From assembly GCA_965202585.1 (NCBI GenBank), contig OZ241826.1, forward strand, positions 42,222,001 through 42,286,000: a stretch of DNA of 64,000 bases, given 5' to 3'. The stretch's first letter is position 1; each line of letters opens with the position of its first letter. Positions 1 through 62,699 of the stretch are shown one piece after another. The stretch is from Thalia democratica. Taxonomy: Eukaryota. Position numbers and translations under genes: made by a program. The notes under the pieces are model-generated. The model did not search any database. It had not been told where the DNA came from and saw nothing but the letters and a program-made list of their open reading frames with translations.

Positions 1-3000
1 AAACGTTTCTTAGGCTTTCTAGTTACTGAACATTTTGTTTTTTTTAGATAAAAACAAACTAAAAATACTTTTTTAAGACCTCAAAGTTCGGCTAAATTTC
101 TTCAAAAATTTTCTAAAGAAAAGTACATTAGTGTGACGATTGGACTATAATCGATATTAAACTTTATTTAAACTAACTAAAAAACATATAAAAACGTTTC
201 TTAGGCTTTCTAGTTACTGAACATTTTGTTTTTTTTAGATAAAAACAAATTAAAAATACTTTTTTAAGACCTCAAAGTTCGGCTAAATTTCTTCAAAAAT
301 TTTCTAAAGAAAAGTACATTAGTGTGACGATTGGACTATAATCGATATTAAACTTTATTTAAACTAACTAAAAAACATATAAAAACGTTTCTTAGGCTTT
401 CTAGTTACTGAACATTTTGTTTTTTTTAGATAAAAACAAATTAAAAATACTTTTTTAAGACCTCAAAGTTCGGCTAAATTTCTTCAAAAATTTTCTAAAG
501 AAAAGTACATTAGTGTGACGATTGGACTATAATCGATATTAAACTTTATTTAAACTAACTAAAAAACATATAAAAACGTTTCTTAGGCTTTCTAGTTACT
601 GAACATTTTGTTTTTTTTAGATAAAAACAAATTAAACATACTTTTTTAAGACCTCAAAGTTCGGCTAAATTTCTTCAAAAATTTTCTAAAGAAAAGTACA
701 TTAGTGTGACGAATGGACTATAATTGATATTAAACTTTATTTAAACTAACTAAAACACATATAAAAATGTTCCTTAGGCTTTTTAGTTACTGAACATTTT
801 GTTTGTTATAGATAAAAACAAATTAAACATACTTTTTTAAGACCTCAAAGTTCGGCTAAATTTCTTCAAAAATTTTCTAAAGAAAAGTACATTAGTGTGA
901 CGATTGGACTATAATCGATATTAAACTTTATTTAAACTAACTAAAAAACATATAAAAACGTTTCTTAGGCTTTCTAGTTACTGAACATTTTGTTTTTTTT
1001 AGATAAAAACAAATTAAAAATACTTTTTTAAGACCTCAAAGTTCGGCTAAATTTCTTCAAAAATTTTCTAAAGAAAAGTACATTAGTGTGACGATTGGAC
1101 TATAATCGATATTAAACTTTATTTAAACTAACTAAAAAACATATAAAAACGTTTCTTAGGCTTTCTAGTTACTGAACATTTTGTTTGTTATAGATAAAAA
1201 CAAATTAAACATACTTTTTTAAGACCTCAAAGTTCGGCTAAATTTCTTCAAAAATTTTCTAAAGAAAAGTACATTAGTGTGACGATTGGACTATAATCGA
1301 TATTAAACTTTATTTAAACTAACTAAAAAACATATAAAAACGTTTCTTAGGCTTTCTAGTTACTGAACATTTTGTTTTTTTTAGATAAAAACAAATTAAA
1401 AATACTTTTTTAAGACCTCAAAGTTCGGCTAAATTTCTTCAAAAATTTTCTAAAGAAAAGTACATTAGTGTGACGATTGGACTATAATCGATATTAAACT
1501 TTATTTAAACTAACTAAAAAACATATAAAAACGTTTCTTAGGCTTTCTAGTTACTGAACATTTTGTTTTTTTTAGATAAAAACAAATAAAACATACTTTT
1601 TTAAGACCTCAAAGTTCGGCTAAATTTCTTCAAAAATTTTCTAAAGAAAAGTACATTAGTGTGACGAATGGACTATAATTGATATTAAACTTTATTTAAA
1701 CTAACTAAAACACATATAAAAATGTTCCTTAGGCTTTTTAGTTACTGAACATTTTGTTTGTTATAGATAAAAACAAATTAAACATACTTTTTTAAGACCT
1801 CAAAGTTCGGCTAAATTTCTTCAAAAATTTTCTAAAGAAAAGTACATTAGTGTGACGATTGGACTATAATCGATATTAAACTTTATTTAAACTAACTAAA
1901 AAACATATAAAAACGTTTCTTAGGCTTTCTAGTTACTGAACATTTTGTTTTTTTTAGATAAAAACAAACTAAAAATACTTTTTTAAGACCTCAAAGTTCG
2001 GCTAAATTTCTTCAAAAATTTTCTAAAGAAAAGTACATTAGTGTGACGATTGGACTATAATCGATATTAAACTTTATTTAAACTAACTAAAAAACATATA
2101 AAAACGTTTCTTAGGCTTTCTAGTTACTGAACATTTTGTTTTTTTTAGATAAAAACAAATTAAAAATACTTTTTTAAGACCTCAAAGTTCGGCTAAATTT
2201 CTTCAAAAATTTTCTAAAGAAAAGTACATTAGTGTGACGATTGGACTATAATCGATATTAAACTTTATTTAAACTAACTAAAAAACATATAAAAACGTTT
2301 CTTAGGCTTTCTAGTTACTGAACATTTTGTTTTTTTTAGATAAAAACAAATTAAAAATACTTTTTTAAGACCTCAAAGTTCGGCTAAATTTCTTCAAAAA
2401 TTTTCTAAAGAAAAGTACATTAGTGTGACGATTGGACTATAATCGATATTAAACTTTATTTAAACTAACTAAAAAACATATAAAAACGTTTCTTAGGCTT
2501 TCTAGTTACTGAACATTTTGTTTTTTTTAGATAAAAACAAATTAAAAATACTTTTTTAAGACCTCAAAGTTCGGCTAAATTTCTTCAAAAATTTTCTAAA
2601 GAAAAGTACATTAGTGTGACGATTGGACTATAATCGATATTAAACTTTATTTAAACTAACTAAAAAACATATAAAAACGTTTCTTAGGCTTTCTAGTTAC
2701 TGAACATTTTGTTTTTTTTAGATAAAAACAAATTAAAAATACTTTTTTAAGACCTCAAAGTTCGGCTAAATTTCTTCAAAAATTTTCTAAAGAAAAGTAC
2801 ATTAGTGTGACGATTGGACTATAATCGATATTAAACTTTATTTAAACTAACTAAAAAACATATAAAAACGTTTCTTAGGCTTTCTAGTTACTGAACATTT
2901 TGTTTTTTTTAGATAAAAACAAATTAAACATACTTTTTTAAGACCTCAAAGTTCGGCTAAATTTCTTCAAAAATTTTCTAAAGAAAAGTACATTAGTGTG

Positions 3001-6000
3001 ACGAATGGACTATAATTGATATTAAACTTTATTTAAACTAACTAAAAAACATATAAAAACGTTTCTTAGGCTTTCTAGTTACTGAACATTTTGTTTTTTT
3101 TAGATAAAAACAAACTAAAAATACTTTTTTAAGACCTCAAAGTTCGGCTAAATTTCTTCAAAAATTTTCTAAAGAAAAGTACATTAGTGTGACGATTGGA
3201 CTATAATCGATATTAAACTTTATTTAAACTAACTAAAAAACATATAAAAACGTTTCTTAGGCTTTCTAGTTACTGAACATTTTGTTTTTTTTAGATAAAA
3301 ACAAATTAAAAATACTTTTTTAAGACCTCAAAGTTCGGCTAAATTTCTTCAAAAATTTTCTAAAGAAAAGTACATTAGTGTGACGATTGGACTATAATCG
3401 ATATTAAACTTTATTTAAACTAACTAAAAAACATATAAAAACGTTTCTTAGGCTTTCTAGTTACTGAACATTTTGTTTTTTTTAGATAAAAACAAATTAA
3501 AAATACTTTTTTAAGACCTCAAAGTTCGGCTAAATTTCTTCAAAAATTTTCTAAAGAAAAGTACATTAGTGTGACGATTGGACTATAATCGATATTAAAC
3601 TTTATTTAAACTAACTAAAAAACATATAAAAACGTTTCTTAGGCTTTCTAGTTACTGAACATTTTGTTTTTTTTAGATAAAAACAAACTAAAAATACTTT
3701 TTTAAGACCTCAAAGTTCGGCTAAATTTCTTCAAAAATTTTCTAAAGAAAAGTACATTAGTGTGACGATTGGACTATAATCGATATTAAACTTTATTTAA
3801 ACTAACTAAAAAACATATAAAAACGTTTCTTAGGCTTTCTAGTTACTGAACATTTTGTTTTTTTTAGATAAAAACAAATTAAAAATACTTTTTTAAGACC
3901 TCAAAGTTCGGCTAAATTTCTTCAAAAATTTTCTAAAGAAAAGTACATTAGTGTGACGATTGGACTATAATCGATATTAAACTTTATTTAAACTAACTAA
4001 AAAACATATAAAAACGTTTCTTAGGCTTTCTAGTTACTGAACATTTTGTTTTTTTTAGATAAAAACAAATTAAAAATACTTTTTTAAGACCTCAAAGTTC
4101 GGCTAAATTTCTTCAAAAATTTTCTAAAGAAAAGTACATTAGTGTGACGATTGGACTATAATCGATATTAAACTTTATTTAAACTAACTAAAAAACATAT
4201 AAAAACGTTTCTTAGGCTTTCTAGTTACTGAACATTTTGTTTTTTTTAGATAAAAACAAATTAAACATACTTTTTTAAGACCTCAAAGTTCGGCTAAATT
4301 TCTTCAAAAATTTTCTAAAGAAAAGTACATTAGTGTGACGAATGGACTATAATTGATATTAAACTTTATTTAAACTAACTAAAACACATATAAAAATGTT
4401 CCTTAGGCTTTTTAGTTACTGAACATTTTGTTTGTTATAGATAAAAACAAATTAAACATACTTTTTTAAGACCTCAAAGTTCGGCTAAATTTCTTCAAAA
4501 ATTTTCTAAAGAAAAGTACATTAGTGTGACGATTGGACTATAATCGATATTAAACTTTATTTAAACTAACTAAAAAACATATAAAAACGTTTCTTAGGCT
4601 TTCTAGTTACTGAACATTTTGTTTTTTTTAGATAAAAACAAATTAAAAATACTTTTTTAAGACCTCAAAGTTCGGCTAAATTTCTTCAAAAATTTTCTAA
4701 AGAAAAGTACATTAGTGTGACGATTGGACTATAATCGATATTAAACTTTATTTAAACTAACTAAAAAACATATAAAAACGTTTCTTAGGCTTTCTAGTTA
4801 CTGAACATTTTGTTTGTTATAGATAAAAACAAATTAAACATACTTTTTTAAGACCTCAAAGTTCGGCTAAATTTCTTCAAAAATTTTCTAAAGAAAAGTA
4901 CATTAGTGTGACGATTGGACTATAATCGATATTAAACTTTATTTAAACTAACTAAAAAACATATAAAAACGTTTCTTAGGCTTTCTAGTTACTGAACATT
5001 TTGTTTTTTTTAGATAAAAACAAATTAAAAATACTTTTTTAAGACCTCAAAGTTCGGCTAAATTTCTTCAAAAATTTTCTAAAGAAAAGTACATTAGTGT
5101 GACGATTGGACTATAATCGATATTAAACTTTATTTAAACTAACTAAAAAACATATAAAAACGTTTCTTAGGCTTTCTAGTTACTGAACATTTTGTTTTTT
5201 TTAGATAAAAACAAATTAAACATACTTTTTTAAGACCTCAAAGTTCGGCTAAATTTCTTCAAAAATTTTCTAAAGAAAAGTACATTAGTGTGACGAATGG
5301 ACTATAATTGATATTAAACTTTATTTAAACTAACTAAAACACATATAAAAATGTTCCTTAGGCTTTTTAGTTACTGAACATTTTGTTTGTTATAGATAAA
5401 AACAAATTAAACATACTTTTTTAAGACCTCAAAGTTCGGCTAAATTTCTTCAAAAATTTTCTAAAGAAAAGTACATTAGTGTGACGATTGGACTATAATC
5501 GATATTAAACTTTATTTAAACTAACTAAAAAACATATAAAAACGTTTCTTAGGCTTTCTAGTTACTGAACATTTTGTTTTTTTTAGATAAAAACAAACTA
5601 AAAATACTTTTTTAAGACCTCAAAGTTCGGCTAAATTTCTTCAAAAATTTTCTAAAGAAAAGTACATTAGTGTGACGATTGGACTATAATCGATATTAAA
5701 CTTTATTTAAACTAACTAAAAAACATATAAAAACGTTTCTTAGGCTTTCTAGTTACTGAACATTTTGTTTTTTTTAGATAAAAACAAATTAAAAATACTT
5801 TTTTAAGACCTCAAAGTTCGGCTAAATTTCTTCAAAAATTTTCTAAAGAAAAGTACATTAGTGTGACGATTGGACTATAATCGATATTAAACTTTATTTA
5901 AACTAACTAAAAAACATATAAAAACGTTTCTTAGGCTTTCTAGTTACTGAACATTTTGTTTTTTTTAGATAAAAACAAATTAAAAATACTTTTTTAAGAC

Positions 6001-8290
6001 CTCAAAGTTCGGCTAAATTTCTTCAAAAATTTTCTAAAGAAAAGTACATTAGTGTGACGATTGGACTATAATCGATATTAAACTTTATTTAAACTAACTA
6101 AAAAACATATAAAAACGTTTCTTAGGCTTTCTAGTTACTGAACATTTTGTTTTTTTTAGATAAAAACAAATTAAAAATACTTTTTTAAGACCTCAAAGTT
6201 CGGCTAAATTTCTTCAAAAATTTTCTAAAGAAAAGTACATTAGTGTGACGATTGGACTATAATCGATATTAAACTTTATTTAAACTAACTAAAAAACATA
6301 TAAAAACGTTTCTTAGGCTTTCTAGTTACTGAACATTTTGTTTTTTTTAGATAAAAACAAATTAAAAATACTTTTTTAAGACCTCAAAGTTCGGCTAAAT
6401 TTCTTCAAAAATTTTCTAAAGAAAAGTACATTAGTGTGACGATTGGACTATAATCGATATTAAACTTTATTTAAACTAACTAAAAAACATATAAAAACGT
6501 TTCTTAGGCTTTCTAGTTACTGAACATTTTGTTTTTTTTAGATAAAAACAAATTAAACATACTTTTTTAAGACCTCAAAGTTCGGCTAAATTTCTTCAAA
6601 AATTTTCTAAAGAAAAGTACATTAGTGTGACGAATGGACTATAATTGATATTAAACTTTATTTAAACTAACTAAAACACATATAAAAATGTTCCTTAGGC
6701 TTTTTAGTTACTGAACATTTTGTTTGTTATAGATAAAAACAAATTAAACATACTTTTTTAAGACCTCAAAGTTCGGCTAAATTTCTTCAAAAATTTTCTA
6801 AAGAAAAGTACATTAGTGTGACGATTGGACTATAATCGATATTAAACTTTATTTAAACTAACTAAAAAACATATAAAAACGTTTCTTAGGCTTTCTAGTT
6901 ACTGAACATTTTGTTTTTTTTAGATAAAAACAAATTAAAAATACTTTTTTAAGACCTCAAAGTTCGGCTAAATTTCTTCAAAAATTTTCTAAAGAAAAGT
7001 ACATTAGTGTGACGATTGGACTATAATCGATATTAAACTTTATTTAAACTAACTAAAAAACATATAAAAACGTTTCTTAGGCTTTCTAGTTACTGAACAT
7101 TTTGTTTTTTTTAGATAAAAACAAATTAAACATACTTTTTTAAGACCTCAAAGTTCGGCTAAATTTCTTCAAAAATTTTCTAAAGAAAAGTACATTAGTG
7201 TGACGAATGGACTATAATTGATATTAAACTTTATTTAAACTAACTAAAACACATATAAAAATGTTCCTTAGGCTTTTTAGTTACTGAACATTTTGTTTGT
7301 TATAGATAAAAACAAATTAAACATACTTTTTTAAGACCTCAAAGTTCGGCTAAATTTCTTCAAAAATTTTCTAAAGAAAAGTACATTAGTGTGACGATTG
7401 GACTATAATCGATATTAAACTTTATTTAAACTAACTAAAAAACATATAAAAACGTTTCTTAGGCTTTCTAGTTACTGAACATTTTGTTTTTTTTAGATAA
7501 AAACAAATTAAAAATACTTTTTTAAGACCTCAAAGTTCGGCTAAATTTCTTCAAAAATTTTCTAAAGAAAAGTACATTAGTGTGACGATTGGACTATAAT
7601 CGATATTAAACTTTATTTAAACTAACTAAAAAACATATAAAAACGTTTCTTAGGCTTTCTAGTTACTGAACATTTTGTTTTTTTTAGATAAAAACAAATT
7701 AAAAATACTTTTTTAAGACCTCAAAGTTCGGCTAAATTTCTTCAAAAATTTTCTAAAGAAAAGTACATTAGTGTGACGATTGGACTATAATCGATATTAA
7801 ACTTTATTTAAACTAACTAAAAAACATATAAAAACGTTTCTTAGGCTTTCTAGTTACTGAACATTTTGTTTTTTTTAGATAAAAACAAATTAAACATACT
7901 TTTTTAAGACCTCAAAGTTCGGCTAAATTTCTTCAAAAATTTTCTAAAGAAAAGTACATTAGTGTGACGAATGGACTATAATTGATATTAAACTTTATTT
8001 AAACTAACTAAAACACATATAAAAATGTTCCTTAGGCTTTTTAGTTACTGAACATTTTGTTTGTTATAGATAAAAACAAATTAAACATACTTTTTTAAGA
8101 CCTCAAAGTTCGGCTAAATTTCTTCAAAAATTTTCTAAAGAAAAGTACATTAGTGTGACGATTGGACTATAATCGATATTAAACTTTATTTAAACTAACT
8201 AAAAAACATATAAAAACGTTCCTTAGGCTTTCTAGTTACTGAACATTTTGTTTGTTTTAAATAAAAACAATTTAAACATACTTTTTTAAT
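1..8290 (+). repeat. 191-bp tandem satellite array, ~43 copies (open at the window's left edge)
   Basis: The marker aacgtttc recurs at a fixed 191-bp period (c at 4, 195, 386, 577). Monomers differ only at a few diagnostic sites. The array degenerates at ~8290. No unique spacers. Confidence 0.98.
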
Positions 8291-8360: not shown

Positions 8361-9251
8361 TTAAGATAAATTTTTATTCAATAAGTCAAACAATAATACA
8401 CATACATTCAAAGTAAACACAAAAATAGAAAATAAATGTATTTTTAATCTTGGCATATCATATTTTTTTTCGACATTAAATTCTAAACCAAATGAGTTAG
8501 ACTTAGTTTCTGAGGCTTTTTTTTCAACAACTTTAACAAATGCAGATGGCTTATCTACAACTTTACAACATTTAGTGCTTACAATATTAGAACTTTTATG
8601 TACAACTAACTTACTATTACCATTAGAATAAAAACTTGCATTATCAACGAACTCATCATCAGAGCTATCTAAATTAGGCCTTTTAACTTTTGAACATAAA
8701 CTGTTGTTATCAACAAATTTTCTTTTTCTACTAATATTACTTTCATCTTTACTTTTTACAATATGAGAGGCTGAGCTAGATGGTATATTAGCTCCTGTAA
8801 ACATTTAAAACTAAGAACAACTACAACTATGAAAAAAGCAAAATAAACTTATCTTCACAAAACAAAAACTTTGAAACAAAAGTATTATAAAACGACAAAA
8901 AATGGTACTAAAAATATTTTAATTTAACAAATACTGTTAAAAACAAAAACTGTACTATATAAATTAAAAAAACCATTAAAAATAGAAATAAAGAAGTAAA
9001 AAACCTTTTAAAACCGTCTCATACATCTCTTGAATGCCATTACTGTTATTTAGCCAAGCTCTTCTAACCATCTGTATATCTTTAAACTGTACATTTGCTG
9101 CCTTACAGTTTTTGTATTTCTCGACTACCTTCTTACAGGCTTCCCTCTGATTAGTTGCAAAAATAACTTTGAAATTAATACTATGCATAATATTTACAAG
9201 CTTTTTTGTGTCTTTAAAAAGACATAAAGCAGTTTTTCGTTTCACCATCAT
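8361..9251 (-). CDS. Putative two-exon orphan gene between the inverted satellite arms (exons 9251-9005 and 8794-8361; ~226 aa, 3' end uncertain)
   Basis: ORFs 8976-9251 and 8361-8804 join in frame (phase 1) via donor AAAG|GTTTTT (9005/9004) and acceptor TTTACAG|GA (8795/8794) across a 210-bp very T-rich intron. The product has basic RKRK/KRP and acidic DSSDDE patches. No family recognised. Confidence 0.4.
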
Positions 9252-9379: not shown

Positions 9380-10328
9380 TACTTTTCTTTAGAAAATTTT
9401 TGAAGAAATTTAGCCGAACTTTGAGGTCTTAAAAAAGTATGTTTAATTTGTTTTTATCTAAAACAAACAAAATGTTCAGTAACTAAAAAGCCTAAGGAAC
9501 GTTTTTATATGTGTTTTAGTTAGTTTAAATAAAGTTTAATATCAATTATAGTCCAATCGTCACACTAATGTACTTTTCTTTAGAAAATTTTTGAAGAAAT
9601 TTAGCCGAACTTTGAGGTCTTAAAAAAGTATGTTTAATTTGTTTTTATCTGAAACAAACAAAATGTTCAGTAACTAGAAAGCCTAAGGAACGTTTTTATA
9701 TGTTTTTTAGCTAGTTTAAATAAAGTTTAATATCAATTATAGTCCAATCGTCACACTAATGTACTTTTCTTTAGAAAATTTTCGAAGAAATTTAGCCGAA
9801 CTTTAAGGTCTTAAAAAAGTATGTTTAATTTGTTTTTATCTGAAACAAACAAAATGTTCAGTAACTAGAAAGCCTAAGGAACGTTTTTATATGTTTTTTA
9901 GCTAGTTTAAATAAAGTTTAATATCAATTATAGTCCAATCGTCACACTAATGTACTTTTCTTTAGAAAATTTTTGAAGAAATTTAGCCGAACTTTGAGGT
10001 CTTAAAAAAGTATGTTTAATTTGTTTTTATCTAAAACAAACAAAATGTTCAGTAACTAGAAAGTCTAAGGAACGTTTTTATATGTTTTTTAGCTAGTTTA
10101 AATAAAGTTTAATATAAATTATAGTCCAATCGTCACACTAATGTACTTTTCTTTAGAAAATTTTTGAAGAAATTTAGCCGAACTTTGAGGTCTTAAAAAA
10201 GTATGTTTAATTTGTTTTTATCTGAAACAAACAAAATGTTCAGTAACTACAAAGTCTAAGGAACGTTTTTATATGTTTTTTAGCTAGTTTAAATAAAGTT
10301 TAATATCAATTATAGTCCAATCGTCACA
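9380..10328 (-). repeat. ~5 inverted copies of the same 191-bp satellite monomer
   Basis: Reverse complement of the left-array monomer. tacttttc recurs at 9380, 9571, 9762, 9953 and 10144 (period 191). Ends at ...tcgtcaca (10328). Confidence 0.97.
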
Positions 10329-13346: not shown

Positions 13347-15538
13347 AGTTGTTTGTAGATTAATGACTGCAAGTTTTTTGGTTGGTGAGTTCTAATAAGG
13401 ACAAAACTGGTCTCAGTCTACCAAAATCTTGTGGTCTGATTGTTGAATTGGCATGGTCAAACCTTACGTTAACTTTTACATTAGAGGTTTAAGTTTTGTT
13501 TGTAGTAAATTACCAAAAACAACTTTGATACTAGTTATTTTTATGGGCCAGAGAGATTAAAAAAAAAAATATTAAAGAAAAAATCTCAGAATGACACAGG
13601 ATAGTTTTTGGTCACTCAGGCTGACTTTTTTGTCTCAAAAAGTGGCAATAACTGTTAGATTTATTCCATATAGATGTTTAAAATTGCTAACACATTTTAA
13701 TGAAATTATTTTACAATTAAAAAGTATTAGTTTTTATAAATAAGTTTCAATTTGTTTTAAAGTTCTAATTTATATTTACTTTTTAGATGATATAGGGTAG
13801 ATTATTAACGGAATATACGTAAACTTTGGTATCAACTATAAAAGGTATGTTGAATTTTTGACTTTTTATAGTTTGCACTTAAACTACTTAACAATTACTA
13901 ATTGGATAACTTAAACTTTTTAAATAAGTTTTTACTATGTTTGATAATTGAAACATCTATAGAGGTGTCAGAGAACTTATGCAAGTTGACATTGTTTTTA
14001 AGTTGGAAGCTTAAAATTAAAGCTATAGAGTATGCTTTTATGAAAATAAATTTGTTGATTTACTGATGAGATGGAGTAAAAATAAATAAGTTTTCAATGC
14101 AAATAAATTTTTATAGATTATTTTTTTCATAAATTCAAAAATTTTAAAATTTCTTCTCTTCCTAGTATTTTTAAACTTAAATAGCCTTGCAAATAAATTA
14201 AATATTAAAATAAATTGAAAAGTATATTTCAAGCCTTGAAATTTTTAGTAAATCCATCTTCTTCAATTAAAATATTTTTTAAAAGAAGTTGTAAAAAATA
14301 TATAAATGACTTATAAAAAGTGCACTGAAATAGTTTAAGTAGCAGTTTTTTACAACATAAATCGATTTATATTAAAAAAGTATTTTGTTATTTTTTATAT
14401 ATTATTTATTTGTCACCTTCTATAGGGAGCATATAACTGTACATTCTTACATTGACATTTTATATCTTAAAAGTTACTTTAAGTAAATAAAAAATAATAA
14501 GTAATTATTAATTTATCAAAATAAGAACAAATTAATAAATAGCTTTTAACTTTTCGTAATGGCCTAAAATCTATTGCATAGAAGAATTCATTTTATCTTG
14601 TAGTTGTAAATTGCTATACTTATTGTTCTTATAGCATTAAAATATTAAGTTAATTAAATATTAACAATGATTTTTTGCTTATATAGAAAGCTGTATGTAA
14701 AAAAGTTTTCTAAAGTTTTTTTTTTTCAAATTAGTTTTATGAAGTTTGTTTTTTTCTATCAACCATATGATTAAAGTTTTTGTATAAGTAAAATCACTGT
14801 TAGAAAGTTCTAGTTGTCTATAAAAATAAAATAAAACTTTTATTTAAACTTAGTTTTTGAAATTAAAAAAAAATGTTATAATAAATAAAATGAACAGTCT
14901 TTAAAAATTCTTAAAAATTAAACTATTTTCTGTTTTTTTAAAACTCTTCCTTTCAATTATTGTAAAGATTTTAAAGTAAAAAAAGATGTTGATATTGTTT
15001 TACAACTTTACAACTTAAATAACATGACACAACCTTTTAAAACCTTAAAACTTTTCATTAAGTTTTGTGGGATTAACTTAACTAAATTTCTGAATAAAAA
15101 TATACGAAAGATTTATAAACTTGATAATTGAAAAACATGTGCTTTTTAAATACAATAATAAGTTTTTATGTATCCCTAAGTTCAAATAAACATTAATTTA
15201 TTTATATACTGCCATTAAGTTATTTGATTTTACTTAGTTTTTGTCATTACTTGAACATTTTTACAAAATAGTAGTATTGTGACAAAATAATATGTGTTAG
15301 AGTTGAAAAACTTTTACAAATATTAGTGTGTAACATGTGGAATTCGGTTAAAAAAAAAATTGGTCTAAAAGTTGAGTTTAAAAAAAATTTAAATTAAAAA
15401 ACAAAAACAAATGTGTATATATAAATAATATTGTTAAACTAAAGTTACTTGTTGTTGACTTTTTAAATTTATTTAAAGTATAGTTGTACTCTTTAATCTT
15501 TTACAATAATTTTTTCATTTAATCATTTTTTAGGAATC

Positions 15539-18061
15539 ATGAAGACATATTTTGCATCTTTAACATGCTTCATTGTGCTTGCTACAATTTCACTGTTAAT
15601 AACAAAAAAGCCAGGTAAAACAAACATAAGCACCAAAAGTCTGGACAAGTTTCAAATGCACCACAACTCTGCACAGGACAACACATTCATAATAGAAAAG
15701 ATTCAATCCATACTGTCTTCTGTAAACTTTGAAAAAGATGTTGCTGGAGATGTTGATTACACTTATAGGCTAAATGAGCTCAACGCAGCAATGAACATGC
15801 AAAATTACTTATCAAACTCCTGGGGCTGTGAGAAAGTTGGTGATATTGATGTTGGCGAACTGAAGACAGTTGCTGATGGGTTTTACATCTACAATGCGGT
15901 GTACAACGGTTCAATGCAGATTTTAGTGCAAACTTCAAAGTACGATGTTGAAAAGTTGATTTCTTCTGGCTGTGGCTTGCACAGCTCTGACAAGAGTCAG
16001 TCTAACCAAGACAGGTGTTTTCTGATGAAAAACTCACAGTTAGTTAAAAGTTCAATCAGCTTGAATGATCTTACTAACCACAGAAATATGGCTAAAATGA
16101 AAGGTATTTGTATTCAGAACTCAAAGAATCAAGTTTTCAATGACATAAAGTCATCTGGTGTGTATATTTTTTATGAGAACAATGATTCTTTTATACTTCA
16201 CAAAGCTAAAAGATTGCCTTTTTTGAGGAGACTGAAAATATGCACGCAGCTCCTTAATTTAGCTGAGTACTTTTCAAACTCTCATGTTGGATCAGTTCTC
16301 TTAAAAAATTGGACTCCTGACAACTTTGTGTTCGATGGTGACATTATAAAGCTTCAGACAGTAAAAGCTGAATTCAGCACGACAGAAAAATCTTGCTTCA
16401 GCAATCAACAATGCAGCATAAGGGACATCGGAGTTTCTTGCATCGAAGGAACCTGCCAAGAATACAACATCAAAATGAACTTGCTTAAGTTGTCATCTGA
16501 AATACTACTTGAGTTGCTTTCGGAGCCTGACAGTGAACTGGATGAGGATTCCAGTTCTGCTCTTCAGAACTTAGTTGTGGGACTTCAACATTTGCAGCTG
16601 AGCACCAAACAAGCCATCTACAGTGTCAACAAGCTAGCAAGGCTGGTGGAAAGCAGCAGGCAAAACGTGAAACTAATCTATTCTGAAAAGGAAGGAGGTA
16701 TGATCATTGACACCAGCCAGAGGAGGGCTGTCAAAGTAAAAATCAATGAAGTCACAGCAGAAAAGTTTGTTCCTCAGCATTTTGAAAAACCTGCTGAAGC
16801 AAAGAGTGAAGCAAAAGCTCCTGCTTCAAACAACCTAAACTCTCTAGAGATGTTTGAGAAGAAGAGTGACATAGACTTTTCCCGCGCCTACAACTTCAAC
16901 TGCCCCTCTGTGAGCCAGGCAAACTGGGGTTGCGTGGTAACTGCTGACTCTTTGCAGGACATTGCAGACCTGTGCCTCAGAGAGAAGCAATGCAAGTCTT
17001 TTGTGGTCATTCCTGACAAGAAGAACCCAAACGTGATAATTGCAGTGCTAAAGAATGAGGACTCAGACTGGCATAAGCGCCAAGGGGTGGTCTCATATGT
17101 GCTAAAGATTAACAAGGAGCAAGCCATTGTGCAGGTGTTTAACTCAACAAGCTGCCTGTCTGAAACTTACGACGCCAACACAAAAAGCAGAAACCAGCAT
17201 CAGGTGAAGTTAGTAGAAGCTTTTGACTCTGTGGTCTGGAATGACATGACCTGGGAGGCCCTTGCTTCAGACGTCCTTGTCAAAAAAGCCAAAAATTTTA
17301 AACGTCCAGCTGGGAAATCAAACGGGGGCGGGCAGATGAACGTTGTCTTTGAAACAGTAAAGCATGGAGACATTGGTGCCCTGTTTGTTGCCAAGGAAGG
17401 GGAGGAAGAGTACTCCTCATCCCAACTGCTGACCTACCACCTGGACAGGTTGCTGGGGCTGTACAAGACCCCGCCCGTTGTTGAGAGGGTGATGAGTCCT
17501 GAAGAGCTGAAAAGTGCTGGGTTTCCTGTTGATGAGGGAGGCAACAAGTTTGACGAGTTCAAGAAGGTCAAGTTTGAGGATGGGTCCCTGATGGGGGTGT
17601 TGATACCAACACTGGACGCATGGACTGTGGAGCACCACATATCAGTGCCAAAACTGGAAACTTTGACTGAATCAGTGACTCCTTTCAATGAAAAGCAAGT
17701 GAGCGATCTTGAATACTTGCTACTTGGACACCTGGCTTCACTACCCATGCCAAAGAAGCACGTGTCTTCCAAAGGACTGCTTATACACACAAAAACCGAC
17801 AACGCGTTCCACCACCCTTCACAAGGCGAGTACCTGAAATACTTTAACAACTGCCAGTTCACAAACAACATGCTTATGGTTGAGGAAGCTGTGAAGGAGT
17901 GCAAGTTGAGTGGGGAGGTGCACAGCATCAGCGGTCAGTTCATTCCTCCACCTCCCAACTTCAGTGAAGTGCTCGATGGTAATTTTGAGGAGTTTTCAAA
18001 AGTGGTTCAAAAGTGCGTTGAGAGGTTTGGAAGGAGCGCTGTTTGCACAGATTGTAAGTGA
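15539..18061 (+). CDS. Secretory-pathway (type II anchored) multidomain protein: PKDCC/VLK-like extracellular kinase domain + PAN-like Cys module + FAM20/four-jointed-like kinase domain; both kinase domains look degenerate
   Basis: 840-aa uninterrupted ORF with a hydrophobic N-terminus (aa 5-21). PKDCC-like segment RLKICTQLLNLAEYFSNSHVGSVLLKNWTPDNFV...C..C..C..C..N.K.NL. PKDCC C-terminal-like YNFNCP...GCV...C...CKSFVV. FAM20/Fj-like GGGQ...ALF...YHLDRLLGL..TPPVV.R and IHTKTDNAF. A strong acceptor (tttttag, 15533) lies 5 nt before the ATG, implying a 5'UTR intron. Confidence 0.85.
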   Translation: MKTYFASLTCFIVLATISLLITKKPGKTNISTKSLDKFQMHHNSAQDNTFIIEKIQSILSSVNFEKDVAGDVDYTYRLNELNAAMNMQNYLSNSWGCEKVGDIDVGELKTVADGFYIYNAVYNGSMQILVQTSKYDVEKLISSGCGLHSSDKSQSNQDRCFLMKNSQLVKSSISLNDLTNHRNMAKMKGICIQNSKNQVFNDIKSSGVYIFYENNDSFILHKAKRLPFLRRLKICTQLLNLAEYFSNSHVGSVLLKNWTPDNFVFDGDIIKLQTVKAEFSTTEKSCFSNQQCSIRDIGVSCIEGTCQEYNIKMNLLKLSSEILLELLSEPDSELDEDSSSALQNLVVGLQHLQLSTKQAIYSVNKLARLVESSRQNVKLIYSEKEGGMIIDTSQRRAVKVKINEVTAEKFVPQHFEKPAEAKSEAKAPASNNLNSLEMFEKKSDIDFSRAYNFNCPSVSQANWGCVVTADSLQDIADLCLREKQCKSFVVIPDKKNPNVIIAVLKNEDSDWHKRQGVVSYVLKINKEQAIVQVFNSTSCLSETYDANTKSRNQHQVKLVEAFDSVVWNDMTWEALASDVLVKKAKNFKRPAGKSNGGGQMNVVFETVKHGDIGALFVAKEGEEEYSSSQLLTYHLDRLLGLYKTPPVVERVMSPEELKSAGFPVDEGGNKFDEFKKVKFEDGSLMGVLIPTLDAWTVEHHISVPKLETLTESVTPFNEKQVSDLEYLLLGHLASLPMPKKHVSSKGLLIHTKTDNAFHHPSQGEYLKYFNNCQFTNNMLMVEEAVKECKLSGEVHSISGQFIPPPPNFSEVLDGNFEEFSKVVQKCVERFGRSAVCTDCK

Positions 18062-19180
18062 ATTTGTTATTTTTAAACTTACACTTGTGTGAAAATTTCA
18101 GAGTGACTACAGCCTTGATGTTAAAAGTTAATAGTTCATATATAATATTTTAAAAATTTGTTTTAAAATACTTATCAGACATACAAGTTTAAAATGCTTA
18201 TATGCTGCTTACAATTTTCAACTTATTTAGTTTTTTAAAGCTAAATGTTTTTTAAATTTTATCAAAATACAAAAATATATAGTTTTGGGTAACATATTAA
18301 TTTTTTTTGAATAGCTTCATGTTTTAAATTCTAATTTATCATTTTTATATCATCGATCATAAAGCTTAAAAAATCTAATTCCCATATAACTATGTGAATA
18401 CATTTCGTATACTTCATATACTTTATATTTTTCAATTAATAAGTTTCTTTTCTTCGAAATGTTGTTAAATGTGCAATTTTCAGGAGTTGCCATTTTAAAT
18501 ATTTTTGTTTATTATGCTTTATAATTATTTAAAAAATATAGTGCTTTATTTACTTTTTTGTACAAGTTTGATCTTTTTGAGTTGTACGTTAGTTTCTTTG
18601 CCAAATTATCAAAATTCGTTGTATATAACTAAACAAAAAGCAATTATATCAAATTTTAAAAAACGTATTTTAATTTGACATATCAGTTCCACGAAATTAA
18701 TAATAACCTGTGACACTCTTTATTTATTAATATGTTTTATATCACGAATTAATACTTTTGCAATATTCACTTTATTGTCGATTGATTTAAACCTTGTGCC
18801 TTAAGTCGGTTTTATTTTAACTTTGAACTCTTCTACTTGCCAAATGTTTTATGTTTAAGCGCTATGGTTAGTGCAAAGTGGAACCTTTTTGATATTTTAA
18901 AACCTTGTTTTATTCTTTTCTTGACAAATTGGTAAAAAAATTCTGTTAAGCTTAAAACTTTTTGAATTTTCAGGTTAATTGCTTGCAATTTTAAGATTTT
19001 GATTTTATGCAGTTCAATTACTCAATTACATTCTTTATAATGAATTTTAAAACACACCTTTTTAAATCAGTTTTAAAAAAGCAGTTTCAATTTACGTTGG
19101 AATAGTATTTTTATTCCTTATACTTCTCCATATATTAAGTACAATTGTATATTTTAGTTTCACACAATTCTTTTTTAATG

Positions 19181-59779: not shown

Positions 59780-62699
59780 CTACTGAAGCGTGAACTTGTA
59801 CGTCGAGTCCTGGTGCTGCTCCTGATGCCCTGGCTCCTGCTGCTGGGAACTCCCCTGAAAACCAGCGTGCTGCTGGTACGTGTACGACTGCGCCATCAAG
59901 TGCTGGTTGCTCATCTGGGACATCCCCTGCTGCTGCTGGTGGCGGAACTGCTGGTACCCCTGGCTCATCATCTCGTCCACGTTCTGGTACGCGCCACTGG
60001 AGGGCATCTGCGAGAAGCTCTGCTCCATCGTGCCGAAGTACGCCTGGTGCGGGTAGGCGGCGTGGTGTCCCGGGTAGGCCGCCCCCGAGAATATGCTCTG
60101 CCCGCCCTGCATGTACTGTTGCGCGCTGCTGAACTGGTTCACCGCCGCCGCCAGGTACGGAGAGGTGCTGGCCCCCGAAGCGCTGCTCGAAGAAGCGTAG
60201 GCCGACATCGGGGTGCCGGTACTTTCGCCGTTCGAGTTTGGAGAAATGGAGTTGTTCCACATGTTGCTCGATGATTGTGACGTCATAGCCATCTGTGGGG
60301 TGACAACCTGCTGCTGCTGGCTCATGTTAATTGACTCCGTCTTCGGTATTAAGTCGATATCACTGCTCGACTCCTGTGCTACTTGGGCTACCTGGCTGGC
60401 ACTTTCTTCTGCTTCTGCTTGAAGGCTGCTGTTGAGCTGCTGCTGCGGAGACTCGGCCTGGTTAGCGGTAGGTGCCAGCTGGACTTGCTGATCGACCAAC
60501 GGGCTGTTATGAGCTTCCGGCTTGACTTGAGAGTCGTTTTTCGGGGCGGCTGAGACGACTTGGTCTTGTTCGGGGCTTTTTGCGCTGGGAGGAGACTGAC
60601 TCGGGTTCTGCTGGGTTTCTGAGGTTTTGGCGACTTCCTCCGACGCCTTCTTCTCTCTGGCTTCCTCCGACTCGGCTGCGCTCTTTCGGTTGGCCGCCGC
60701 CTGCTCCTTCTGCTTCAGTTGCTGCTGTTGCTGCCTGCACTTTGCGCGACGGTTCTTGAACCAGACCTGAAAAAACATCAGACGTCAAAACAGTCAAAAT
60801 TTTTCTAAGAAAACATACCAAGAAGCCAAAGCAAATTAACTTGGCAACGTTTAGATACTTTACTTTGCACATTTGAAATGTCAAACCTGAACGCGGGACT
60901 CTGGCAGGCTGATCTTCAGCGCCACGTCCTCCCTCATGAAGATGTCCGGATACCTCGTTTTGGCGAACAACCTCTCCAGTATGTCCAGCTGGGATCTGGT
61001 GAAAGTTGTTCTTTCCCTGCGCTGCTTCCTCGAGTTTCCTGGTATTTTGAGTTTGTTGTTTAAAATGTTACGCAAGTAGAAGCTTCACTGACTATTCAGC
61101 AAAAAACAAGTTATTGAAAACAGGTAGATTACAACAAATACGTTGAATCAAAAATACACGTTTGTTTATGTGTTTTAAAATCTGCGTGCTTACCGTATAC
61201 GTTTTGAGGAACGAACGGCATCTTGTTGGGACCTTGACCGGGTATGCCAGGAAACCCTGTTGTGAAAATAAATGAGCTAATTTACTTTGCAGGCTGGAAT
61301 TTTAAATGTGCGTTAGTGATACTTTTAGAACTAGATGTGATGAAATTTTGATTGAATTTGTATTTATATAACTTTGTACAAATAACGTTGAAAAATGCTT
61401 TATTTTCTTTTAAATTGATTAGAGAAGGTTATAAAGGTCATAATGAACTAGCCAAATTATGCTATAATCAAAAAATATTTGATATATAAGTTTAAAAATT
61501 TGTAAATAATTATTTGTAAAAATTGGAAGCTTTTTATCATTTATTTAAATTACAAAAGCTTTAAGTTTTGAAAAGTTTAAGTAGATAAAGATCTTAAAAA
61601 CTAACCAAAACCTTGAGTAAAGTTTACAATTTTTAACAATATTAAGCTCTTTAAAGTAACTTTAATTAGAAAAATTACAATATTCAAACTGGCTCTGTGA
61701 AAACTTAAATAGATGTTTCAGTAGTTTTAGTTGTAAAATATAAAAAGATAACAACTTACTTGGAAAGTATTGACTCGGGTCATCTGAAAAATAAAATTGT
61801 GGTAAGTAATTTTAATTTCAAAGATAAGTTTACTGAGGTATGTACTGAGAACTTAAAAAAAATAATAATCAAATCTAATAAAGATTAAAGGTTAAAACAA
61901 TATGAAACCGGTTATAGTATAGCTCAAAACAAGCATGAATGCCTTTAATATTTTATCATTAGTATAAATTGTTTACTTTATTTATATTTTCTTAAAATAT
62001 CCATTTAGGTTTGAAAGTTTTACTACTCTGCTTCAAGATGCAAATCATTTTTTTCTCAACTAAAATTTAATCACGTTTGTAAGTTTACCAACAAAATATA
62101 AGTTTCAAGGCTAGCAATACCAAAAACAACAGGTACTTTGTTTTTGGTTGAATTTCGTTACTAAACTTTGTAACTTTAAAAACTTTCAGTAAAGGTTTTT
62201 ATTTCATTTTGCAGGTTAATTTGAAACAAAAACAACAACAGAGTTAGAAGAAGAAACTATTATAACATAACATTGACTAATTTTGTTAAAAAAATATTGT
62301 GAAATAAGTAGACTGTTTATTATCTCTTATTCAACATTTCTAGTAAAAAAACTTTTATGATTTACTTTCATGAACAGGCAACTCACTGTGGTACGAGAAC
62401 ATGGAGTGAGGAAGGCCGATTTCAGGATGATTCGGGATCATTCCTGGGTGGTATCCGTTCACTCCCGGTTTCATGTAGCTCATCTTCTGAAACAGACTCT
62501 GATCACTGTGAACAAAATAAACTGTTTTATTATAGTTTTTTTACACCAACATAAAATATGAGTAAGCAAAAGAAGTTTAACACACAAAGTGTTTATATAT
62601 AACAAAAATAAAATTGTTTAATTTTTTGTTATGGTGTTTCTTCTATACATAAGTAGTTAAAAACTGTTGAACTTACTTGGGTGAGTTTGGGTAGTTCAT
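59780..62699 (-). CDS. Otx: Orthodenticle/Otx homeobox transcription factor, paralogue B (455 aa; exons 62699-62677, 62505-62387, 61783-61760, 61256-61194, 61038-60887, 60766-59780)
   Basis: All six exons have GT/AG boundaries and join in one frame (1368 nt). Otx-type N-terminal [10 protein letters not shown]. Homeodomain [46 protein letters not shown]|[13 protein letters not shown] (K50). WSP-like MWNNSISP and tail DSTYKFTLQ. An acceptor at 62759 and a GTAAGT donor at 63243 suggest an upstream 5'UTR exon. Confidence 0.95.

Follow-up and report, generated by a model that had tools for sequence, protein, structure and literature searches.

To our knowledge, the described secretory-pathway kinases (VLK/PKDCC, FAM69/DIPK, POMK, FAM20A-C, FJX1 and GASK1) are all single kinase-fold proteins encoded by separate genes. 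Here a gene of the salp Thalia democratica was analysed in which a PKDCC/VLK-like kinase fold and a divergent FAM20-type fold follow one another in a single reading frame; both halves look like pseudokinases, most catalytic positions being substituted, as a sequence-only reading of the same DNA had suggested. The gene lies at 15539-18061 of a 64,000-nucleotide stretch (the window; NCBI GenBank assembly GCA_965202585.1, 802 Mb; contig OZ241826.1 at 42.2 Mb, positions 42,222,001 to 42,286,000 of the forward strand), and coordinates below are those of the window unless another contig is named. The PKDCC/VLK and FAM20 families are both lumenal (PMC5865150, PMC3696010), and over half of the secretory-pathway kinases are functionally obscure (PMC5865150).

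Module architecture of the salp protein

The plus strand at 15539..18061 holds one unbroken open reading frame (ORF) of 840 codons with no internal stop, taken from the program-made ORF listing and lying at exactly the coordinates where a single fused polypeptide had been proposed; it encodes 840 amino acids (aa) followed by the stop codon. Its standing as a coding sequence (CDS) was supported by uninterrupted orthologous ORFs on two marine metagenome contigs and by overall ratios of nonsynonymous to synonymous substitution rates (dN/dS) of 0.09-0.11. A hydrophobic segment at the N-terminus (aa 5-22, 15551..15604, plus strand), read from the sequence and matching the family pattern, in which about 20 hydrophobic aa come after a basic stub, is a predicted signal peptide or type II signal anchor. 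The protein contains 20 Cys, 16 of which are invariant in the family, and six N-glycosylation sequons. Placement in the secretory pathway was deduced from the hydrophobic N-terminus, the 16 invariant Cys, the six sequons and the lumenal location of both parent families.

A degenerate PKDCC/VLK-like kinase fold was delimited at aa 94-388 (15818..16702, plus strand) using Pfam, an AlphaFold2 (AF2) model, Foldseek and motif comparison, in agreement with the PKDCC pattern previously read at aa ~96-370. The Pfam model PIP49_C (FAM69/PKDCC kinase domain) matched aa 226-343 at 30 bits against a cut-off of 25.2; of ten relatives tested, eight also exceeded the cut-off. For aa 60-405 the AF2 model had a predicted local distance difference test (pLDDT) score of 82.5. 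When compared with AFDB-SwissProt by Foldseek, aa 94-388 matched residues 129-404 of mouse and human PKDCC (E 2e-16 and 5e-16, template modelling (TM) score 0.65), and the next family followed at E 3e-9, seven orders of magnitude weaker. With the N-half family profile searched against the PDB, POMK came first (2e-7) and canonical kinases next; stand-alone relatives retrieved by exhaustive HMMER search were annotated 'extracellular tyrosine-protein kinase PKDCC-like'.

These stand-alone PKDCC-like proteins carry the motifs GxGxTK, VAVK, LLKE, DFKxxQF and KLxDLDD, and were used for motif comparison. The glycine loop GxGxTK is absent in the salp protein, the beta3 Lys of VAVK corresponds to Gln131, the alphaC Glu of LLKE to Ser171, the catalytic-loop Asp of DFKxxQF to Asn257 and the catalytic-loop Lys to Thr259, and DLDD is occupied by Thr274-Val-Lys-Ala (274-277), with Thr274 and Lys276 in place of DLD. 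Asn for Asp in LLKNW and TVKA for DLDD had already been picked out from the letters, and both were placed correctly. By this comparison the N domain of the salp copy retains none of the canonical residues for nucleotide binding or catalysis. Asn257 also lies within an N-W-T glycosylation sequon (aa 257-259, 16307-16315), with N-W-S at that place in one other tunicate member, and to judge from the sequon the former PKDCC-like active site may bear a glycan.

A low-confidence linker of family-variable length (aa 389-438, 16703..16852, plus strand), recognized by gappy alignment columns and by a pLDDT that falls below 50 where the N-half model ends, separates the kinase fold from a PAN/apple module (aa 439-525, 16853..17113, plus strand) with four invariant Cys. 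In the AF2 model of aa 436-840 (pLDDT 85, predicted TM score (pTM) 0.75), aa 439-525 (model residues 4-90) superposed on PKDCC 408-492, its last 85 residues, with a root mean square deviation (rmsd) of 2.0 Å over 88 residues (E 1e-5). This structural match makes the module the counterpart of the PKDCC C-terminal module, and the Cys module proposed at aa 445-525 was borne out. The PAN/apple identity comes from structure only, a PDB profile search with the middle module alone having given no match. A modelled complex of aa 90-535 with aa 536-840 scored 0.00 with the family alignment left unused, a value that carries no weight for or against packing of the two halves.

The remainder of the protein (aa ~534-840, 17138..18058, plus strand) is predicted to form a divergent FAM20-superfamily kinase fold that retains YHLDRLLGLYKTPP, Glu624 and Asp754-Asn755. 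As a single sequence the C domain gave a weak match to Hydra Fam20 in the PDB; with the family profile the six top matches were all FAM20 chains (Fam20B 5e-5, FAM20A 4e-4, ceFam20 1.5e-3), and a second, collinear match was obtained at the last helix. Foldseek against the PDB placed FAM20 chains in the top 27 positions (E 8e-10 to 2e-7), with PI3K-type kinases from 9e-5, and against reviewed UniProt models ranked FAM20B (3e-10) above FAM20C, FAM20A, FJX1 (2e-7) and GASK1 (1e-5); for the C half the best family stood 8 Z units above the next. The C half had been assigned to FAM20 or four-jointed, and of these FAM20 was found both by profile and by predicted structure, FJX1 being weaker.

Pfam models did not reach threshold on the C domain in any of 18 members. 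The Fam20C model (PF06702) was unlisted for the salp protein even at E up to 10, and when run against the salp's own genome (E up to 1) it matched only a canonical Fam20 locus on another contig (C2, 70796533-70801920), a multi-exon, FAM20B-like gene with VVFKQKR, DRHNAEIASFH, GNGDRHHYE and LDN intact. FAM198 gave weak matches at the alphaC motif in 6 of the 18 members (E 0.013-0.03, below cut-off). Because no curated Pfam model reaches threshold, the FAM20 homology of the C domain rests on the PDB profile matches together with structure. Judged by profiles and predicted fold, the C domain is a divergent branch of the FAM20/FJX1/GASK superfamily, outside Pfam's Fam20C family. Per-domain searches by profile and by structure, which the sequence-only reading had named among its checks, assigned both domains independently to named families.

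For the active site, the C domain was aligned with FAM20 proteins and with the genome's own Fam20. FAM20A Gln258 replaces ceFam20 Glu213, a Glu essential in Fam20C and located where the Kbeta3-Kalpha3 loop ends (PMC5413348). After correction for chain offsets (index 196 of the 467-aa FAM20A chain is residue 258, index 154 of the 453-aa ceFam20 chain is residue 213), this position corresponds to profile column 91 and to Glu624 in the salp protein. Gln629, five residues after Glu624, pairs with the second Glu in the motif (E/Q/D)RHNAE of FAM20 proteins; the claim that the salp protein has Gln at the alphaC Glu, as in FAM20A, was therefore wrong, since Gln629 replaces a different Glu. The alphaC-beta4 motif HLDR.L.F/Y..PP and the equivalent of the essential Glu were both present in the profile alignment to Fam20B, Fam20A and ceFam20. 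The metal-binding DN is also kept: Asp754-Asn755 in HTKTDNAF aligns with MLDNAKR of the own Fam20, and its Asp is retained in most, not all, family members.

The catalytic loop reads VFDYLIGNGDRHHYE...LVMLDNAKR in the genome's own Fam20 versus LEYLLLGHLASLPMP...LLIHTKTDNAF in the salp protein, and the GNxDRHH region FDYLIGNGDRHH versus LEYLLLGHLASL, with a family-invariant Leu732 at the position of the Asp (Asp299 in Hydra Fam20; PMC5865150). The D.xGNxDR loop is absent, as had been stated. Exon by exon, the C-domain profile gave weak hidden Markov model (HMM) matches to the own Fam20 in the alphaC exon and the last exon only, in collinear order; its catalytic exon stayed unaligned, as expected if the loop has been lost. 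For the Lys of beta3 VVFK (the FK Lys) two registers were considered, pairing it with Glu605 or Val617, and Lys is found in neither. On these alignments the C domain has lost both the catalytic-loop Asp and the FK Lys. Catalytic residues of the protein did not realign as intact, Glu624 being the sole exception.

Gene structure, transcripts and selection

Contigs from sequencing run X6, with 99% or more identity to the window, follow the genome colinearly over 15532-18181 and no farther, also across the domain junction. An X6 contig carries 46 foreign letters at its 5' end, joined exactly at the AG preceding the start codon; a genome-wide search placed them at one site only, 13817-13842 of the window, and a GTATGT donor (13845) begins 2 bases 3' of this match. 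The gene accordingly comprises a non-coding exon 1 (5' untranslated region (UTR), 13797..13844, plus strand), defined by the 46-letter 5' end and ending ...CTATAAAAG before the GTATGT donor; its 5' limit is the start of the transcript contig, and the true start is possibly farther upstream. It is followed by the gene's sole intron, a GT...AG intron of 1689 nt within the 5' UTR (13845..15533, plus strand; donor GTATGT at 13845, acceptor ttttttAG at 15532-15533, junction contained in the X6 contig), and by exon 2 (15534..18181 at least, plus strand; X6, X1 and X2 contigs), which holds the complete CDS and ~120 nt of 3' UTR. Metatranscriptome contigs from the marine runs X1 and X2 (90-99% identical) tile 15656-18176.

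The X6 contigs, whose library type is not on record, were taken as RNA-like because their 5' end is spliced and their ends are sharp at the transcript borders. A spliced leader was ruled out as the source of the 46 letters, which have a unique upstream genomic site followed by GTATGT. A GTAAGT overlapping the stop codon was likewise ruled out as a splice donor, the transcript-like contigs reading through to 18181. The 840-aa gene is expressed.

On the two marine metagenome contigs the orthologous frame is likewise unbroken, encoding 840 and 848 aa at 96% and 80% identity. dN/dS was calculated by the Nei-Gojobori method for the three salp lineages and was 0.11 and 0.09 overall, 0.09-0.13 for the N-terminal fold, 0.07-0.08 for the C-terminal fold and 0.07-0.15 for the linker; the middle module gave 0.08 for the close pair only, dS being saturated in the other two comparisons. 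Purifying selection is strong in both kinase-like halves, and by the values for all modules the protein is maintained as a whole. As dN/dS is low in both kinase-like halves and transcript-like contigs run from the spliced 5' exon to ~120 nt past the stop codon, the gene is maintained and not dead.

G+C content is 44% in the ORF versus 22-28% in the flanking DNA. A 191-bp satellite occupies 1-8289 and 9380-10328 of the window, with 43 copies at 98% identity, then a core of ~1.1 kb, then five copies in opposite orientation. Pfam gave no match for four other ORFs of the window, among them a 147-aa ORF in the satellite core (8361-8804, minus strand) and a 332-aa ORF (59780-60778, minus strand) in a 41% G+C island (60001-62000 being G+C-rich), and an Rfam scan of the window gave no match.

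Family distribution and gene history

Exhaustive HMMER searching retrieved 198 relatives at E ≤0.001, with 16 below 1e-30, nearly all of them full-length (800-995 aa). The sequence-only reading had called for a search of invertebrate proteomes, and the same architecture was found in molluscs, amphioxus and tunicates; named members with the fusion are Clavelina, Branchiostoma (amphioxus), an Oscarella pearsei transcriptome (sponge) and many molluscs (Bulinus, Aplysia, Ylistrum, Candidula, Patella, Babylonia, Sinanodonta, Haliotis, Elysia and Octopus). Vertebrate or ecdysozoan members were not among the named matches. All members are labelled 'uncharacterized' or 'FAM69 protein-kinase domain-containing' in the databases, and a literature search, in which most subscription journals lay outside coverage and absence is hence not proof, did not retrieve a description of the fusion. 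The view that this is not an annotated family has so far stood. The fusion is an old, unnamed metazoan family that is not peculiar to the salp; the architecture seems new to the literature, and its member sequences are already in public databases.

The degeneration extends through the family. Of the 18 aligned members, only Clavelina has the catalytic-loop Asp of the N domain, and none has the FAM20 catalytic Asp or its loop. The Lys, Glu and DLD of the first domain are kept in molluscs (VKS, LLRE, DLDD) and lost in tunicates.

The Oscarella pearsei member (884 aa) is the sole non-bilaterian full-length member and sits on a very long branch in the tree; the sequence comes from a transcriptome, and its sponge origin needs confirmation. 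It has Lys at the FAM20 FK position (WFKVEPG) under one of the two registers and lacks the Asp of DN.

A paralog was located on another contig of the salp genome (C5, 31,000,063-31,003,347, minus strand), with its PKDCC-like, PAN and FAM20-like modules arranged alike; it has at least four coding exons and is 30-49% identical to the salp gene. Nothing convincing was found for its 5' exon(s) within 4 kb upstream, and the exon count is a lower bound. Its catalytic loop looks canonical (RDWKPSNF), with Arg at the alphaC Glu and ELG for DLD. In the tree, the salp gene and a metagenome orthologue pair with the paralog and a JGI protein, within tunicates and next to Clavelina, and the stem of the salp-gene lineage measures 1.25 substitutions per site versus 0.39 for that of the paralog. 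The salp gene is thus a fast-evolving duplicate with an intronless CDS. Its probable origin is retroposition from the lineage of the intron-bearing C5 paralog, with a 5' exon recruited afterwards, as suggested by the intronless CDS of the fast-evolving copy beside an intron-bearing sister. What speaks against it is that the absence of introns is its only basis, and intron loss would look alike.

Among related loci, one canonical Fam20 was detected in the genome (a lower bound), the C2 gene described above, and no gene of Fam20C type. This agrees with the single Fam20B-like gene reported for tunicates, FAM20A appearing first in fish (PMC7948968). A stand-alone PKDCC was not detected with an amphioxus PKDCC-like query, which matched only the salp gene and the C5 paralog (again a lower bound).

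Function and comparison with known systems

With moderate confidence, and on the strength of substituted motifs and predicted folds, we favour a tandem pseudokinase that would carry out no canonical phosphotransfer and would act as a lumenal or extracellular binding or scaffold protein. From the N-terminus, a signal or anchor is followed by a complete PKDCC/VLK-like unit (kinase fold plus PAN/apple) and by the divergent FAM20-type fold, and the degenerate kinase clefts together with the PAN module would serve to bind a partner enzyme, a glycan or some other ligand. A lumenal scaffold was one half of the function offered by the sequence-only reading and is the half favoured here.

Several points weigh against the favoured scaffold. 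The C domain keeps Glu624, the equivalent of ceFam20 Glu213, and the metal-binding Asp754-Asn755, with Lys608 and Lys619 in the neighbourhood of the lost FK site; as these residues persist, the active site could conceivably have shifted. The equivalences of the FK Lys and of the catalytic loop come from motif alignment, not from residue-level structural superposition, and the register of the beta3 strand is ambiguous between two possibilities. Inactivity was at one time claimed for POMK and SelO as well (PMC5865150, PMC7948968).

The same residues are the starting point for an atypical enzyme, in which the FAM20-like half (in molluscs perhaps the PKDCC-like half) would bind nucleotide and use relocated residues for a non-canonical reaction, glycan or lipid phosphorylation and AMPylation being the candidates. 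Glu624 occupies the position of the essential Fam20C Glu, which is Gln in FAM20A, Asp754-Asn755 matches the FAM20 metal-binding LDN, Lys619 is kept together with Glu624 in all chordate members, mollusc N domains retain VKS, LLRE and DLDD, purifying selection reaches the strength seen for enzymes, and several secretory 'pseudokinases' have proved active or still await a test according to reviews (PMC7948968, PMC5865150). We nevertheless consider such an enzyme unlikely. The FAM20 catalytic Asp is an invariant Leu732, the FK position lacks Lys in either register, all four N-domain motifs are lost in tunicates, and the retained residues are not family-wide (molluscs have A/Q/I/R/H/V in place of the Glu, and the sponge sequence lacks the DN Asp).

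A broader proposal, drawn by analogy with JAK JH2-JH1 and FAM20A-FAM20C and doubtful to us, is that the family represents an ancient secretory class in which PKDCC-type and FAM20-type folds would form an intramolecular regulatory pair, with ancestral or mollusc forms that might bind nucleotide and perhaps be non-canonically active; it would constitute a new type of lumenal kinase.

A FAM20A-like allosteric activator, whose partner would be a canonical kinase of the secretory pathway, either a FAM20 or a PKDCC orthologue, was the other half of the function first suggested, and we now regard it as improbable. In its favour are the shared FAM20 fold, the example of FAM20A, which switches on Fam20C as a non-catalytic heterodimer partner (PMC7948968, PMC5865150), and the common pairing of pseudokinases with active relatives. 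The analogy is weakened in that the Gln which defines FAM20A is not at the equivalent position, and possible partners are few: the one canonical Fam20 locus detected (a lower bound) is FAM20B-like, in line with the tunicate gene set reported (PMC7948968), and PKDCC-like loci are confined to the salp gene and its paralog.

Mis-assembly, read-through joining two genes or a decaying retrocopy, which an intronless CDS in a genome with otherwise intron-rich genes and the very AT-rich, repeat-bearing surroundings might suggest, is highly improbable given the single 840-codon open frame, its unbroken counterparts on two independent metagenome contigs, 16 more full-length proteins of the same architecture in other taxa, transcript contigs colinear across the domain junction, and a dN/dS of about 0.1.

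That the two main lumenal kinase lineages are joined in a conserved fusion suggests physical cooperation between both folds, at least in some animals. The fusion ranges from a sponge transcriptome to invertebrate chordates, and strong selection persists after the loss of catalytic residues, which offers a natural system in which to ask what lumenal pseudokinases do. The family adds a divergent, Pfam-invisible branch to the FAM20/FJX1/GASK superfamily, half of each protein being hidden by its automatic annotation. In salps, it provides a clean case of a long-lived duplicate with an intronless CDS that recruited a 5' exon.

Compared with PKDCC/VLK, the N-terminal 525 aa of the salp protein are collinear with the entire protein (aa 94-388 with 129-404, aa 439-525 with 408-492), and both are Cys-rich with an N-terminal signal or anchor. 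The salp protein differs in that GxGxTK, VAVK, LLKE, DFKxxQF and DLDD of PKDCC-like proteins are all substituted, in the ~50-aa linker between kinase fold and PAN module, and in the entire second kinase fold appended to it. With the FAM20 proteins (Fam20B, a xylosylkinase; Fam20C, the Golgi casein kinase; Fam20A, a pseudokinase) the C domain shares (F/Y)HLDR.LG.Y..PP, the Glu213-equivalent Glu, LDN/TDN, the Cys after the DN segment and the C-terminal C...G..V helix, and FAM20 chains are the only ones found by sequence profile. In contrast to them, identity is only ~12-17%, Pfam Fam20C is blind to all members, the GNxDRHH loop (Leu at Asp) and the FK Lys are missing, and the fold is fused behind a PKDCC-like unit; FAM20A differs further at the Gln258 position, which is Glu in the salp protein. 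FJX1/four-jointed and GASK1A/B (FAM198) share the superfamily fold (Foldseek E 2e-7 for FJX1 and 1e-5 for GASK1), and protein language-model neighbours include the FAM20, FJX1 and GASK1 families, but FJX1 and GASK1 matches are consistently weaker than those to FAM20B/C (FAM20B 3e-10), and all are below Pfam thresholds. Tandem kinase-pseudokinase proteins such as the JAKs (JH2-JH1) also have two kinase-like folds per chain, at least one of them degenerate; these are cytosolic, and their folds are paralogous canonical kinases of which one is active. The folds of the salp protein, in contrast, derive from two atypical lumenal families, and both seem, from their motifs, to be inactive.

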